A stretch of DNA of 63,280 bases, counting the filler, from Octopus bimaculoides (lineage: Eukaryota): assembly GCF_001194135.2 (NCBI RefSeq). It is 5 parts of 4 records of this genome, joined end to end, with 100 filler letters (N's around TTAATTAATTAA, not from the genome) between each part and the next. Parts side by side here need not be neighbours in the genome. Positions count along the whole stretch, not along the records: positions 1 to 16,375 come from NC_069002.1; 4 more parts are not named here. One strand, written 5' to 3'. This document shows positions 601 to 5,869 of the stretch, piece after piece. Both the position numbers and the translations under genes were made by a program. The first letter of the stretch is position 1. Each line of letters opens with the position of its first letter. Below the pieces are notes generated by a model. The model ran no database searches. It had not been told where the DNA came from and saw only the letters and a program-made list of their open reading frames with translations.

Positions 601-757
601 CGTTGTTGTTATCTATATTTTTAGCTTATTCATTTCGCTGATAAATACCAGCTTTTTATAATAGAATTAATTCAAGATTTAAGAATTTAGGTAAAAGTGC
701 ATACCATGTTTTCAATTGCATTCCTTCTTTCTTATATTTCATATCATTAGTTGTGCG

Positions 758-824
758 ATGAGAAGAACTCTTGCACTCCTCTACATCGGCGTACTCATTT
801 CATGCGCCTCGTCGCAGAAGCAAG
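758..824 (+). CDS. Knottin gene 1, coding exon 1: signal peptide MRRTLALLYIGVLISCASS-QKQ
   Basis: Acceptor cattag| at 750, 7-nt UTR, ATG at 758, basic-hydrophobic-small-residue signal peptide, donor CAAG|gtaaat (phase 1). Mirrors exon 13249-13318. Confidence 0.8.
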
Positions 825-870
825 GTAAATATTCACCACTACCATCACTTCATAGTAATCCTAGAGGCGG

Positions 871-908
<38 letters not shown>

Positions 909-1106
909 GAAGCGGCGAGAGTCGTTTTTTATGTAGTCAAATGAGAAATTACTCTCATCAAATTTTCATGGCTCTTCTATCTTCCATACTATATTCATGA
1001 GGCCCACGTTATTCTTGTGTTCAGCCTTACCCTACAATGATGTGTATTATCATTCATTTAGTTTTTCCACGTCTATTTTTATTTCTATTATTATCGCTTA
1101 AATCAG

Positions 1107-1126
1107 ATGTTTCCAACCGAGTTCCA
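1107..1126 (+). CDS. Knottin gene 1, candidate propeptide exon 2a (DVSNRVP)
   Basis: Good acceptor cttaaatcag|AT; begins with Asp as the paralog's exon 2 does. The donor CCA|gtataa is weak. Confidence 0.35.
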
Positions 1127-1248
1127 GTATAACTGTTGAGGGCCCATATATTATATTGTTATTACTTACTTATACTTAGTGTATATGCTTCGTGTATTTT
1201 CCGATGGCTGCAATAAACTGGTGGAATATATACAGTCTCAAAGAGCAG

Positions 1249-1283
1249 GATGATAAAATGCCTCAGTATCGAGGACAGATCAG
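1249..1283 (+). CDS. Knottin gene 1, candidate propeptide exon 2b (DDKMPQYRGQI-R)
   Basis: Strong phase-2 donor CAG|gtaact, which makes Arg with the first base of exon 5429. The acceptor is uncertain (alternatives at 1180 and 1244). Confidence 0.5.
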
Positions 1284-2480
1284 GTAACTCACCCTCAATC
1301 ACATTTGTGAGTGATGAACACCGATGTTTCGCCATTGTTGTGACTTAAAACATCACCTACCCGCTAGGGTTGAAGTCAAGTTACCTAGCATGTGCTGGCA
1401 TGGCCGGAAATTGTATAGCAAAGAGAATATTTACATTATGAAATAAAAGCAGCCCTAGTTAAAATTTATGTACAATAAATTGGTTATATTCCTACAATCC
1501 ACAAAATATGACTTAATTTTTCACAATCATATATAGTTGTGGACAAGTGATTCAGTTCGGCTCCAATTCGGTTCCGATACGTGATGTTGATAAACCATAA
1601 AAATGGCAAAACATCGATGTCCATCGCATCTGAATCCTTCATAATCTCGAGACTTATCCCCAACAGATTATCGTATATATCCTCACATTGAGCTTTTCAC
1701 CTCTGCCCCCCCCCCCACCAAAATGCTTGCAAACAGAACGGTGGAGTGACTATATTTAAACGATTTATAACTTCAAAAGACAGTATAGTTTTCGGTAAAG
1801 GAATATATACTCTCTGAAGGTACTAGAAAAAAGTTTTTGAAGCTAATGAAGCCTAATTTGATTAATGAATAATGATTATAAATCGTTTTTCCTTTTTCGG
1901 TTCTTTGTGACCATTTCATGTAGAACAACCAAATATAATACATATTATACATAGTTTATACATATACTTATATATATGCATGCACGCACACACATACACA
2001 CATTATTCTCTTGTTATTCAAATATCTGATGAGAGCAGCTGAGTTATTTATATATTTCTATACATAAGACAGGATGTCCGAAGTCCTTGGATAGTTTTAT
2101 AACTTTTTAATCTTGGATGTTTTATTATATCATTTCTAGATCGCAGCATGTTCGATGATTTGTCAGAAGCAGATGATCGCTTGGAAAGAAGGTACGGATT
2201 ATATATTGACAATTGTTTGAGAATGGCATCAGTAACAGTGAAATAATTATTATAATTCTTCTGTTAAACTGATTTATTTGTGTTAGGCTTGTTTTGTAAA
2301 GAGTGTGTTGTGTCTTGTGTAACAAAAATAAAATGAGAAAATATTAGAGTAAGTGTGTGAAATATTGTCTGAATTAGTGGAAAAAATATTTATTTAAATA
2401 ATAACAAGTTTTGAACGGTACAACAACACACTATAATACAAACAACTATATACTTGTTGTAATTTGGTTATCCATAGTCC

Positions 2481-2515
2481 GATGATATTTCGGAATACAA
2501 TTCCTTCTTCAGATC
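2481..2515 (-). ncRNA. Minimal type I hammerhead ribozyme (Penelope-like), intact core
   Basis: Minus strand reads GAU CUGAAGA A GGAAU ugu AUUCC GAAA UA UC AUC: core, 5-bp stem II, palindromic AUAU stem III, UC cleavage site, 3-bp stem I. Confidence 0.7.
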
Positions 2516-3269
2516 TTCTTAGATGGAGTCTCTGCTATAAACTGTTTAACGGCTTTTCTTTTTTTTCCGGAAGTGTCTCAGTAGTGGTCTCACGAAGCTC
2601 CTTCCGGAATTTTTTTTTGTTATAAACAATACAAGAGCATATTATTAAGAATGAACCTAAACACGTCCAGATGTAGCTAAATAATATATTGATTACCAGT
2701 CTCCAGCCTGTTGTTAATTTGGGGTCCTAGTCTGTGTATGAGTAATGCTTCCTTAATTCTTAAATTACCCAAATTTCTTTCATTTCTTTCATTATTTAAA
2801 TGTTAAACAAAGGTATTTTCCATTGAGAATATATCTAAAATGTATTTTTATCAAATAAATACGCGAATGAAATGTAGAAATAATATATCTGAGAAACAGA
2901 TTTTGAAAGGAGGTGATAAGGTTGTGAAAACCCAACCACGGATGAACAAAACATTATTAGTCAACTGGCAGAAATGATATAGAAACGGTAATCAACCAAG
3001 TATATCTCTTTCTCCCTATCATACTTTTGTCCATGTCTTCTTATTAGGTGTAACAAAAACTGCGCTTAGATTGATTATTATTGTTAGTGCGACCAAAATC
3101 AGTCATTTGCTCTGCTCACATCACATTGAATTTTGTGCCAAATTCATGACACAGTTTCAGTATCACATTATCGCGTTTGGGCTCTACGAATATCCCAGAA
3201 TATGTCTAAATAATCATGGACAGTCTACACCGGTTAGTTTTGAAATTGAAATCAGCCATTGAAAGATTG

Positions 3270-3535
3270 AAAGAAATAGAAACAGATATTATGGTGGAAA
3301 ACAAGAGATGAGCAAAAGCGAAAAGATTTAGAATATTAGAAGGAAAATACTGATTCAAGAGGAATATATTTGACAGATCAGAATAATCCTGGAAAATAAA
3401 CTTACTTCAAAATTTAAGAAGCAGGCTGTTAACTCACTAATAATCTCGATAGCAAATTACAACTTCACATTTGTCAATTGGAATGAACAAGAAGTTAAGA
3501 AAAAGTAACAAAATTTTAATAAATGATTGACTCTG
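3270..3535 (+). mobile_element. R4/Dong-like non-LTR retrotransposon fragment (RT thumb), degenerate
   Basis: Translates as KQAVNSLIISIANYNFTFVNWNEQEVKKK*QNFNK*LT, aligning with NKTVACNVFAVPVLIPTFGLLDWTLDEIRAIHVKVRKILT at ~6960-7080. Confidence 0.65.
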
Positions 3536-4221
3536 TCCTCCTTAAGATAATTCACATTGGATGTATGTCTCTGCGGACGGGGAGTATATATATTCTTGTG
3601 CGTATATATAAATAACAAATACAAATCGCTCAGTCTGTGTGTTTCTGTATATATATATGTATATATATANNNNNNNNNNNNNNNNNATATTTGTATATAT
3701 ATATACATACATACATACATACATACATACATACACACACACACAAACACACAAACATATGTATATACACATATAACAAAAATACACATAGAGGAAATCA
3801 CATCATCAATTGTTGAATTTACCATACAAGGCCGGCGATTGTTTCTATTATATTGACATATTTAGATACAGAAAATACCATCAAAGTTAATATAACGGAA
3901 AATACACGTTAACGTTTTCAAGGCGTCCAAAATGATTTAAATTCGAAGTGACCCCAAGAAGATATCTCCAGTACACGAATGCATACAAAAAATTTAAGAA
4001 GAAATATAATCTAAGAAAAGGTACTTCTGTATTCAACTTTTGGTGACGTCAGTGGATAACGAAAGAATAAAAACTAAGCATGAACTCTACGTTAAAACAA
4101 TTTGAAACAGAGATTCTACGTCACAACAATTATTTATCTATCTATTAAATATACTAAACATTTATATAATGTGATTTCCTTTATCTTTATTTTCGTTGTG
4201 TAATATTCTGATCTTCTTGAA

Positions 4222-4298
4222 ATTTTTTACATGATCTACTTCTTATTTGGATCTACTTCTTATTTGGATCTACTTCTTATTTGGATCTACTTCTTATT
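4222..4298. repeat. Tandem repeat (gatctacttcttatttg), about 4 copies of 17 bp
   Basis: Directly visible. Confidence 0.9.
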
Positions 4299-4304
4299 TA
4301 TGAG

Positions 4305-4437
4305 GAATTATCTTAGAAGGTTATCATACTTCAATTTATCGGTGTCTAATTGTTTGATATATTTAGCCAAATTCATTTAAAACTGAATGCTTTACTCATA
4401 TCGTCCTGGATCTTTTAATCCCTGTTTTTGTTTTGAT
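4305..4437 (-). mobile_element. Possible Penelope-like GIY-YIG region fragment
   Basis: Minus translation NLAKYIKQLDTDKLKYD resembles SLADCVWRLKGDKIKYS in the Penelope element at ~62650. Confidence 0.35.
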
Positions 4438-4959
4438 NNNNNNNNNNNNNNNNNNNNNNNNNNNNNNNNNNNNNNNNNNNNNNNNNNNNNNNNNNNNNNN
4501 NNNNNNNNNNNNNNNNNNNNNNNNNNNNNNNNNNNNNNNNNNNNNNNNNNNNNNNNNNNNNNNNNNNNNNNNNNNNNNNNNNNNNNNNNNNNNNNNNNNN
4601 NNNNNNNNNNNNNNNNNNNNNNNNNNNNNNNNNNNNNNNNNNNNNNNNNNNNNNNNNNNNNNNNTTTATTGTGCTTTTAATTATTAATTTTTCTATATGT
4701 GATAGTGGATTTTCATCGATGAGTTCTTGCAACTTGGTTATTTTCCCTAAAACTATATATTTTATATATATTTTTATCTATAAAGCTCAATTTAATTTTA
4801 ATTTTTTATAAATTGATTTTAATTGAGTTTTTACCTGTAATTTTGGATTTTGTCCCTAACGTCATACACTCTCTCTTTCCTTTCCTGAGCGTCCAATAAT
4901 ACTATCCATATCACGTCCTCACTTTGTTGTTTTTTCGTTTTTTTGTTATTGTTTTTTTG

Positions 4960-4996
<37 letters not shown>

Positions 4997-5428
4997 CAAT
5001 ACATATAAAGAATCCTCCTTAACATGATTTGATTCGCGTGTACTCCGATCATTCATGGAGAACTGGCTTTCTTTCGCTATCCTATCTAAATTTACAGGGG
5101 CCATAAATTGCTATTACCTGGTTCGTTGTTTGTTTCCTTCGGTTTTTAACGTTGATTTATTGTTATTTTATTGCTTTTTATAATGATTTTCGTTCGTCTT
5201 TTGACAGTCCCGCTTCTGCTGTAACAGTGGTAGAAAGCAGGATTGGAAGCACTACAATGTTAACATAAATGGTAGAATCAAATAACTATAGAATCATTTC
5301 ATTGAAACGATAGCATTTGAGAGGCACCGTATATACATAATAAAGCTATAGTATAGCTACTATATACCTGGTGTCTTTAGATTGCTAGAATTTCTAATTA
5401 TGTAGCGTTCTCTTTTCTCTATTTACAG

Positions 5429-5636
5429 AAGCGTCAAGTGCAAAAAATGGACATGTAATATTCCACATGATTCATGCTGTGACGGTCAAGTTTGTTCCTG
5501 TAAAAGCCTATGGACCGGATGCATCTGTAAAGACGCAGATTCGAGTTGCGCAATAATTGCAATGCATAATTATATATGTATACTTATTTGTTTGTTAGCA
5601 TTTCTTTTACATGTAGTATGGACCTTTTACATGTAG
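5429..5636 (+). CDS. Knottin gene 1, terminal exon: SVKCKKWTCNIPHDSCCDGQVCSCKSLWTGCICKDADSSCAIIAMHNYICILICLLAFLLHVVWTFYM*
   Basis: Strong acceptor tcttttctctatttacag| (phase 2); Cys spacing C-x4-C-x6-CC-x4-C-x-C-x6-C-x-C; stop TAG at 5634-5636; AATAAA motifs at ~5668-5678. Confidence 0.85.
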
Positions 5637-5869
5637 TATGGGATATTATTCAACATCATATCAAACTAATAAAATAAAGATTAAATTATAATGTTAAAAC
5701 ATAAATCCTTTGCGTTCATTCGTTATACATATGTTCTTATATAAACGTTCGTTGTGTAAATCGTAATAAATATGTATGCATGCATGTAACAATTATATAA
5801 ATGCGTTATAGTATTCACGAAACAAAATTTCTTTTTTATACATACATACATACATACATACATGCGAAC

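Follow-up and report, generated by a model that had tools for sequence, protein, structure and literature searches.

Here we describe gene 1, which encodes a cysteine-rich peptide of the knottin type, in a 63,280-nucleotide stretch of DNA (filler included; hereafter the window) from Octopus bimaculoides. Judged from its sequence, and with high confidence, a genuine O. bimaculoides gene, RefSeq LOC128250512, has its three coding exons at window 751-5636, and we assign this gene with similarly high confidence to the protostome CCWamide/agatoxin-like peptide (ALP) neuropeptide family, as a strongly derived paralogue. Taken as a whole, gene 1 is very probably a derived CCWamide/ALP knottin paralogue with a hydrophobic tail behind its cysteine framework. 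It extends a known family by a further variant and does not represent a gene of a new kind, and NCBI has already annotated the locus, unnamed, as an 'uncharacterized protein'. The window DNA matches the O. bimaculoides assembly GCA_001194135.2 at 100% identity on chromosome CM046622.1, near 29.15 Mb (coordinates in our locus L001 equal window coordinates plus 12745), and is AT-rich eukaryotic sequence, rich in (ACAT)n and (TA)n microsatellites and in interspersed repeats. The parts of gene 1 are laid out as follows.

751..824, plus strand: signal-peptide exon, with its acceptor at 749-750 (cattag/), ATG at 758 and donor AAG/gtaaat
825..2139, plus strand: intron 1, phase 1, GT...AG borders
2140..2191, plus strand: propeptide exon, 52 nt (3n+1), borders tttctag/A...AAG/gtacgg
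2192..5428, plus strand: intron 2, phase 2, splitting a basic codon; holds the gaps 3670-3686 and 4438-4664 and microsatellites
5429..5528, plus strand: first part of the terminal exon, with the third base of the split Arg codon, S-V-K and the core C1...C8 (5439-5528), CKKWTCNIPHDSCCDGQVCSCKSLWTGCIC
5529..5636, plus strand: C-terminal extension, KDADSSCAIIAMHNYICILICLLAFLLHVVWTFYM and the stop TAG (5634-5636); hydrophobic, modelled as a single helix
5604..5641, plus strand: tandem duplication, two 18-nt copies of CTTTTACATGTAGTATGG (5604-5621 and 5624-5641) with 20-nt spacing
5637..5790, plus strand: probable 3' untranslated region (UTR), with AATAAA at 5668, 5673 and 5765

The coding segments 758-824, 2140-2191 and 5429-5636 join in frame, across GT-AG borders with good polypyrimidine tracts, to give a precursor of 108 aa counted from the ATG at 758 (a preliminary description of this DNA had given 109 aa), which reads MRRTLALLYIGVLISCASSQKQ / DRSMFDDLSEADDRLER / R-SVKC.... 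The first segment (67 nt) encodes MRRTLALLYIGVLISCASSQKQ plus one nucleotide and ends in phase 1; the second encodes (D)RSMFDDLSEADDRLER(R), and its last two bases (AG) open the second Arg codon of the RR cleavage site. The split codon, ...GAA AGA AG/gt...ag/A AGC, yields E-R-R-S in gene 1, and its counterpart in the neighbouring paralogue gene 2 is CG/A. The terminal exon opens behind the acceptor gcgttctcttttctctatttacag/A (5428/5429), and reading its Cys frame requires phase 2; the preliminary description had rightly called this acceptor strong and its phase that of gene 2, whose phases are the same. Exon 1 ends in phase 1 and the terminal exon is in phase 2, and a direct join of the two therefore gives another frame, which, as had been foreseen, reads EASSAKNGH... 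and ends in VAQ and a stop; we rejected this 63-aa, Cys-poor product without homologues as the main product. The 3n+1 middle segment that had been called for is the 52-nt exon at 2140-2191, which restores the Cys frame, and the proposed order of signal exon, 3n+1 middle and phase-2 terminal exon equals the coding structure of NCBI's LOC128250512. A search of 5.8 billion proteins returned the RefSeq protein of that gene (P0001, 119 aa), which includes the entire 108-aa model at 100% identity. The same exon architecture is shared by the paralogues P0002, P0003 and P0012; exon 2 is homologous in LOC128250515 (window 2008-2260 against L001 3941-4193, at 80%) and likewise in LOC128250537.

The 11 extra N-terminal residues of the NCBI model (MPKCNGCLSCA) come from a leader exon at L001 10001-10026, a 26-nt coding start about 2.7 kb upstream of the window that is spliced to the acceptor at 750/751. 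The ATG at 758 has a purine at -3, which the upstream leader ATG lacks, and LOC128250515, with an identical signal exon, is annotated as starting at MRRTL; for these two reasons we infer that the M at 758 is the likely start of the gene 1 precursor.

Both assembly gaps, 3670-3686 and 4438-4664, lie within intron 2 (2192-5428) and are crossed by no coding frame. GCA_001194135.2 carries identical N runs and cannot close them. On either side of gap 4438-4664, however, the flanks are colinear with the gap-free Octopus sinensis locus L003, in the same order and orientation (window 4278-4437 with L003 27464-27297, and window 4970-5201 with L003 27096-26874), and the roughly 200 nt between them in O. 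sinensis hold a (TA)n run, besides unique sequence that resembles no exon of the family. In LOC128250515, moreover, intron 2 is free of gaps and the three coding exons are the same. The exon suggested earlier to hide in gap 4438-4664 is therefore not required, and is unlikely.

Read in the Cys frame, window 5430-5636 translates to SVKCKKWTCNIPHDSCCDGQVCSCKSLWTGCICKDADSSCAIIAMHNYICILICLLAFLLHVVWTFYM and a stop, which is exactly the C-x4-C-x6-CC-x4-C-x-C-x6-C-x-C pattern that had been proposed, followed by a 35-aa tail; the candidate mature peptide is SVKCKKWTCNIPHDSCCDGQVCSCK.... A list of start-to-stop open reading frames (ORFs) does miss this exon and shows only a 24-aa piece of it (5562-5636). 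The O. sinensis ortholog of the exon lies on the minus strand at L003 25683-25469 (CM016880.1) and reads ...SGQKRHAKCKKWTCHMPHDKCCDGKVCSCKGPWHGCKCRGRHPSYAIVAMHSYICIRICLLTFLFHVVWTFYM up to its stop. It keeps 8/8 Cys, the four-residue (x4) first loop, the W and the open frame, at 21% nucleotide divergence and with a 15-nt in-frame indel, and for this reason the terminal-exon pattern is not chance. Gene 1 has a ninth Cys, whose place is taken by Y in O. sinensis; since this residue is not conserved, we take the framework to be eight Cys. The shortened first loop and the hydrophobic C-terminus, both remarked on earlier, are kept in this ortholog and in LOC128250537. Intact yet not among the called genes, the O. 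sinensis exon probably belongs to an unannotated gene; exons 1 and 2 of that ortholog were not found in the 30-kb locus L003.

Octopus DNA of this kind could also yield a Cys-rich ORF by chance, from a TG-rich microsatellite mis-called as a gene: (TGTA)n/(ACAT)n tracts are abundant, their translations are Cys-rich, and many tblastn matches are of the CVCVCV type. The terminal exon is non-repetitive, however, its ortholog has conserved Cys spacing, and the signal and propeptide exons are homologous, with family-specific intron phases. The O. sinensis ortholog, the paralogue exons and the profile matches given below effectively refute this explanation, to which we attach a negligible probability.

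At the 3' end, the duplication at 5604-5641 causes a frame shift by which the second TAG serves as the stop, an arrangement common to O. sinensis. Of the earlier remark that AATAAA lies about 35 nt after the stop, the hexamers stand (5668-5673 and 5673-5678), but the distance is 32 nt, and with 68 copies in the AT-rich window the hexamer is weak evidence alone. A third copy (5765-5770) sits within a block that both the paralogue and O. sinensis conserve; the 3' UTR as a whole diverges by 9% from O. sinensis and by about 20% from the paralogue.

In CCWamide/ALP genes the last intron has phase 2 and parts base 2 from base 3 of the basic cleavage-site codon, and the published Lottia and Notospermus CCWamide splice patterns are phase 1 then phase 2 (PMC8557429). 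Gene 1 has this layout, with three coding exons, a phase-1 intron 1 as in the Lottia and Notospermus genes, and a phase-2 last intron that splits a basic codon (AG/A). Its Cys order is C-C-CC-C-C-C-C with two C-x-C pairs, and when gene 1 is aligned with CCWamide/ALP proteins from publications and databases (A6, A7), 8/8 of its Cys stand in invariant columns. An aromatic residue lies past the sixth Cys and before the seventh (C-KSLWTG-C), and this W is kept in the O. sinensis ortholog and in all cluster paralogues compared. C1, W and C2 are correctly placed in the DNA alignment A3 and in the full-length alignments A1, A5 and A6; a MAFFT alignment of mature regions (A4), which mis-paired C1 of gene 1 with C2 of the others, was left unused. 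The amidated aromatic C-terminus of the family (..W/F-G-(K/R) or ..WG) is absent from gene 1, in which C8 is followed by KDADSSCAIIAMHNY...FYM and the stop, without a Gly-basic signal.

Set beside spiralian CCWamide (PMC8557429; canonical Octopus member ...RTCSKWRETCQPWSNSKSKCCDPSSLVCKCNLWMQNCRCVNKLWGG, P0018/P0020), gene 1 shares the signal, the non-conserved propeptide, the basic site and the 8-Cys last exon, the division into three coding exons by a phase-1 and a phase-2 intron, the latter within a basic codon, and the same C-C-CC-C-C-C-C framework with a W three residues past C1 and an aromatic between C6 and C7. It differs in that loop 1 has 4 residues and not 6, loop 2 has 6 and not 9-10 or more, the 'CKCN' and 'NCRC' motifs are missing, and a 35-aa hydrophobic tail stands in place of the ..(L/I)W-G-(R/K) end; and whereas spiralian CCWamide is a single conserved gene, gene 1 belongs to a fast-evolving tandem family. 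Arthropod ALPs and the spider U8-agatoxin-Ao1a have the same gene structure and are identical in pattern to gene 1 from C2 on (x6-CC-x4-C-x-C-x6-C-x-C), but ALPs end in an amidated ..GLFQKWGK, with no hydrophobic extension.

A hidden Markov model (HMM) built from 26 published CCWamide/ALP domains gave the following scores, with 1000 Cys-fixed shuffles for each sequence tested.

Canonical O. bimaculoides CCWamide: 58.4 bits
Gene 4: 40.8 bits, not among the shuffle-tested sequences
Gene 2: 36.6 bits, reached by 0/1000 shuffles
LOC128250515 (P0002): 29.9 bits, reached by 0/1000 shuffles
Gene 1: 14.7 bits, reached by 23/1000 shuffles

For the O. sinensis gene-2 ortholog, too, 0/1000 Cys-fixed shuffles reach the score, the tested scores spanning 29.9-39.0 bits. 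Pfam Toxin_9 (PF02819), whose gathering threshold is 21.3 bits, is passed by gene 2 (23.2 bits), a clearer CCWamide/ALP member than gene 1, and by the canonical Octopus CCWamide (23.5); P0002 (15.1 bits), LOC128250537 (15.8) and gene 4 (19.4) fall below it. An exhaustive HMMER search with a subfamily profile against 1.84 billion representative proteins returned only 10 proteins at E≤1e-3, namely the three query genes, further O. bimaculoides paralogues, one Argonauta protein and mollusc CCWamide-framework proteins, two of which are named 'U8-agatoxin-Ao1a-like' and 'toxin Tbo-IT2-like' at source. We assign gene 1 to the family because of its gene structure, its Cys framework and its clear paralogy to better-scoring members, with an identical signal exon and alignable introns and UTR.

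At least 8 loci make up the octopus subfamily, gathered on one chromosome into two clusters. The first cluster holds four genes: LOC128250515 (upstream, plus strand), gene 1 (plus), gene 2 (LOC128250510, minus) and LOC128250511. The second, also tail-bearing, lies 7.3 Mb away at CM046622.1 36.41-36.43 Mb (locus L004). The members that bear on gene 1 are these.

10992..13318, minus strand: gene 2 (LOC128250510), 134 aa, exons 13318-13249, 12491-12437 and 11271-10992, phases as in gene 1
L004 10623-12744, plus strand: LOC128250537, with an x4 first loop (CKRLPC) like that of gene 1 and a 50-aa tail
L004 17824-17590, minus strand: terminal exon of the second cluster, not in the called-gene list
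L004 ~2650-2440, minus strand: terminal exon of the second cluster, not in the called-gene list

Gene 2 is convergent to gene 1, with a 500-N gap (11530-12029) in its intron 2, and in O. sinensis the orthologs of both genes (that of gene 2 being LOC118767484) stand in conserved convergent synteny. The last ten or so codons of gene 2 are in a different frame in O. sinensis (..AFRLFCLAWVLR and stop against ..AFRLWSSSAWPGCCDNHNPK and stop). According to the DNA alignment, the x4 first loop, common to gene 1, its O. sinensis ortholog and LOC128250537, arose as loops 1 and 2 became 18 nt shorter than in LOC128250515; gene 1 and LOC128250537 share 8/8 Cys and only 42% of non-Cys positions.

The tail is a property of the subfamily. 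All terminal exons examined (8/8) lack the ..LWG(R/K) end, and the amidation end likewise, and carry an extension of 28-50 residues instead. A core of the form ..(H/C)NYIC(I)xI(C/S)LL(A/S)F.. (..HNYICI.ICLLAF..) is common to the loci, and its similarity across subgroups whose introns and UTRs no longer align was matched by 0/2000 composition-preserving shuffles for four cross-group pairs. The spacing from C8 to this core takes five lengths (10, 12, 13, 16 and 18 aa), which implies at least 4 indels, all multiples of three. The comparison of loci supports the tail as a real, ancestral and translated feature, and the simplest history would be that a founder lost its stop and amidation signal, reading through into 3' sequence whose proximal part was later constrained. 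On the Kyte-Doolittle scale the highest mean over 19 residues in gene 1 is 2.48; across the paralogue tails this value lies between 0.88 and 2.48, and some of these tails finish with polar residues.

The coding exons have diverged at very unequal rates. The signal exon (758-824) is identical to that of LOC128250515 at 67/67 positions (L001 2764-2830), whereas the surrounding 500 bp are only about 80% identical, which points to gene conversion or very strong constraint. In the knottin, 41% of aligned bases differ between the same two genes, with 36 gap columns besides, against 20% in the 3' UTR. Between O. bimaculoides and O. sinensis, gene 1 and its ortholog diverge as follows.

Knottin: 20.8%
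Tail: 7.1%
3' UTR: 9.0%
Intron end: 16.9%

The knottin is thus more divergent than the rest between species (Fisher p=0.0065). By the NG86 method, knottin plus linker give dN 0.23 and dS 0.32 for the species pair, and C1-C8 a dN/dS of 0.38, which rises to 0.59 when Cys codons are left out; constraint is stronger on gene 2 (0.23). Synonymous change is itself raised in the knottin (dS 0.3-0.4, against 0.06-0.09 in tail and UTR). With dN/dS below 1, positive selection on the knottin is not demonstrated and we make no claim of it. What the aligned DNA does show is a fixed Cys scaffold whose loops change at about the neutral rate or faster, beside an invariant signal exon, a pattern like that of toxin and defence peptide families. 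The mature peptide of canonical CCWamide, by comparison, is identical in O. vulgaris, O. sinensis and O. bimaculoides. Conotoxin superfamilies have three-exon signal/pro/mature genes with a conserved signal and a hypervariable mature region. Gene 1 has the same exon layout, invariant signal exon and hyperdivergent mature region, but its Cys framework and intron phases are of the CCWamide/ALP type, and no sequence relationship came to light, conotoxin sequences themselves not having been compared.

We modelled the peptide with AlphaFold2 from a 9-sequence alignment (mean pLDDT 70.6). The model has a beta-hairpin (residues 20-25 and 29-35) over C5-C8 (C-x-C...C-x-C), as expected for a knottin, and the tail as one helix at residues 40-67 (pLDDT 81-89), preceded by the small residues S-S-C-A. 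The top Foldseek matches, at E≥2, were an AgRP-derived knottin, ASIP, omega-Aga-IVB, PcTx1, Tbo-IT2 and U4-agatoxin. The predicted fold is thus consistent in direction with a knottin and not statistically decisive. Agouti domains have 10 Cys and a CC-x2-C-x2-C arrangement. The C-terminal domain of Agouti/AgRP is a comparable inhibitor cystine knot (ICK)-like scaffold, of the form C-x6-C-x6-CC...C-x-C-x6-C-x-C, but gene 1 has CC-x4-C-x-C and 8 framework Cys, and the Pfam Agouti model has no match to it at E≤10. UniProt A0A0L8HXQ3 (P0020), the canonical O. bimaculoides CCWamide, bears the automatic name 'Agouti domain-containing protein', which reflects its ICK-like Cys pattern and not its identity as a CCWamide.

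A number of observations weigh against our reading of gene 1 and its tail. The NCBI model of LOC128250512 is computational, and the protein collection contains no sequencing-run-derived (Logan) copy of the gene 1 protein, whereas the canonical CCWamide has one. Taken alone, gene 1 is marginal on the CCWamide HMM (p ~0.02) and, at 10.9 bits (E=0.61), falls below the Toxin_9 cut-off of 21.3 bits. The modelled core reaches only moderate confidence (pLDDT 56-73), and Foldseek found no significant match in the Protein Data Bank (PDB), the best being knottins at E≥2. Across comparisons the knottin dN/dS is 0.4-0.6, or 0.6-1.1 without Cys, on very few sites. As for the tail, it changes between species like neutral DNA (dN 0.078, dS 0.064) and is as conserved as the 3' UTR; its coding sequence is AT-rich and microsatellite-like; and it adds an odd number of extra Cys. 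Its ends are set by frameshifts (+2 nt in LOC128250515, the 20-nt-spaced duplication in gene 1 and its ortholog, and gene 2 between species), and in gene 2 it is weakly hydrophobic (0.88) and ends in DNHNPK.

Some of these points would suit a decaying or functionless duplicate, transcribed noise or an incipient pseudogene, that lost its stop and amidation site and is translated into AT-rich former 3' UTR, its tail being merely T-rich coding sequence. They are the neutral rate of the tail, an end set by frameshifts and by a duplication with 20-nt spacing, the AT-rich codon content, the rank of gene 1 as the weakest family match and the missing Logan copy. Against them, neither of the two species nor LOC128250537 has lost any of the 8 Cys codons, the frame or a splice site, while the remaining sequence has changed by 20-50%; under neutrality, the calculated chance that 8 Cys codons are spared is ~0.007-0.1 between the species and much smaller between the paralogues. 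All indels in the knottin and proximal tail are in frame, and the tail core is kept across subgroups with non-alignable UTRs. Such decay strikes us as quite improbable.

In our preferred reading the precursor of gene 1 consists of a signal peptide (MRRTLALLYIGVLISCASS), a short acidic propeptide ending in RR, a 30-residue 8-Cys core of the ICK type and a 35-residue hydrophobic extension. It would enter the endoplasmic reticulum (ER) and be cleaved at RR by furin or a prohormone convertase; the core would fold with agatoxin-type disulfides I-IV, II-V, III-VIII and VI-VII and act on a channel or receptor as its ligand or gating modifier, and the tail, as a transmembrane helix or a glycosylphosphatidylinositol (GPI)-attachment signal, would retain the peptide in the membrane or partition it there. 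A role of the tail in membrane association, as a transmembrane or GPI-type anchor, is the one we favour, as a serious possibility that falls short of being probable; it draws on the modelled helix at 40-67 and on a hydrophobicity that varies among paralogues. Proteins tethered in either way combine an N-terminal signal peptide with a hydrophobic stretch of some 15-20 residues at the C-terminus, and GPI attachment further calls for small residues at an omega site some 8-12 residues before that stretch.

The tail could instead be a C-terminal propeptide removed in maturation, which would make gene 1 an ordinary secreted neuropeptide or hormone paralogue and leave a soluble knottin of ~31-38 aa. 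The parent family is neuroendocrine (PMC8557429, PMC13311285), the layout of signal, propeptide, dibasic site and peptide is preserved, and single basic residues do occur just after C8 in paralogues (FFYK/FR in gene 2, VSR in LOC128250515). Gene 1, however, has no basic residue in its tail after the K adjoining C8, LOC128250537 has none between the K by C8 and the tail core, there is no Gly-basic amidation signal, and the fast loops are unlike the invariant canonical CCWamide. We regard removal of the tail as doubtful, if well within reach of the evidence.

The known toxin branch of the family (PMC8557429, PMC13311285) supports a further explanation, in which a salivary-gland family was recruited from the endogenous CCWamide, much as agatoxins were in spiders, and gene 1 is a venom, or 'doppelganger', toxin: a secreted, prey-directed channel toxin whose tail aids partitioning into membranes. 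Tandem duplication, an invariant signal exon and fast loops on a fixed Cys scaffold are typical of toxin families, and the canonical Octopus CCWamide mature peptide, in which no such change is seen, is invariant in the three Octopus species. The only PDB sequences matched by the subfamily profile, and the closest to it, are the omega-agatoxins IVA and IVB (1IVA, 1OAV, 2NDB, 1AGG, 1OMB), aligned over CC-x4-C-x-C-x6-C-x-C at a non-significant E=0.24; with 1OMB (omega-Aga-IVB), Foldseek gives a likewise non-significant TM of 0.57 on the target and an rmsd of 2.2 Å. These toxins reach beyond their last Cys, by an extension that we take to be hydrophobic and needed for activity. It measures ~12 residues (48-aa chain, last Cys ~36), however, against the 28-residue transmembrane-grade helix of gene 1, which would be unusual in a soluble secreted toxin, and the omega-agatoxins are spider venom products with no demonstrated orthology to gene 1. 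The dN/dS is not above 1, and our literature searches on octopus knottins, on agatoxin in the posterior salivary gland and on octopus CCWamide turned up no such toxin. On balance a venom role seems unlikely.

Lynx1/Ly6-uPAR prototoxins are three-finger proteins, held by GPI anchors, that modulate ion channels. Should the tail be an anchor, the octopus subfamily would follow the same logic of a toxin-type disulfide-rich fold on the cell surface, with an unrelated fold and with an anchoring suggested by hydrophobicity and the modelled helix. By this analogy the subfamily would consist of naturally membrane-tethered knottins, cell-autonomous modulators of ion channels or receptors and an ICK counterpart of the prototoxins, derived from a soluble CCWamide by loss of stop and amidation and then by tandem duplication; in this full form the proposal is speculative, and we hold it with a low degree of belief.

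The window holds further elements outside gene 1 and gene 2. LOC128250511, the fourth CCWamide-like gene of the first cluster, has a canonical-looking core (CKCN..NCRC), a basic end (..EGCRKRK) and no hydrophobic tail; the remainder of the gene extends beyond the window.

14939-14998, plus strand: alternative first coding exon of LOC128250511 isoform X2, MMLCEIRYIIWWLFKDFYIA

A short interspersed repeat lies at window 74-311; the 30-kb O. sinensis locus alone contains at least 9 copies of it (84-87% identity), it also adjoins the gene-1 ortholog exon there, and it has no tRNA or Rfam match. Window ~5838-8100 is a decayed retroelement-like stretch with broken ORFs (e.g. ...NLYLKRKQGGGGLTSILTAFE...), of which those at 6189-8100 have no Pfam match; within it, window 6494-7314 has an 86% copy upstream of LOC128250515 (L001 465-1288) and window 5838-6692 is matched at 90% by syntenic O. 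sinensis sequence. At 15371-15425 lies an interstitial array of the TTAGGG type, in degenerate form (gttagggttagggttaggattacggctagggtttaggtt...). Rfam (gathering thresholds) and ARAGORN gave no matches on the whole piece.

CCWamide/ALP is a protostome-wide peptide family whose sole characterised offshoot is the spider agatoxin branch, and a 2026 review gives both the receptor and the function of CCWamide as still unknown (PMC13311285). Our literature search found no description of an octopus knottin or of a CCWamide-derived expansion. The octopus branch would be a second, independent repurposing of the CCWamide scaffold, in tandem and fast-evolving, with the amidated end replaced by a conserved hydrophobic tail. 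The analysis gives a family and names to at least 5 RefSeq 'uncharacterized' genes and indicates that both O. sinensis and O. bimaculoides have members missing from the annotation. With the tail as an anchor, the subfamily would be a natural example of a tethered knottin; if it is expressed in the salivary gland, it would add a peptide-toxin class to cephalopod venom.

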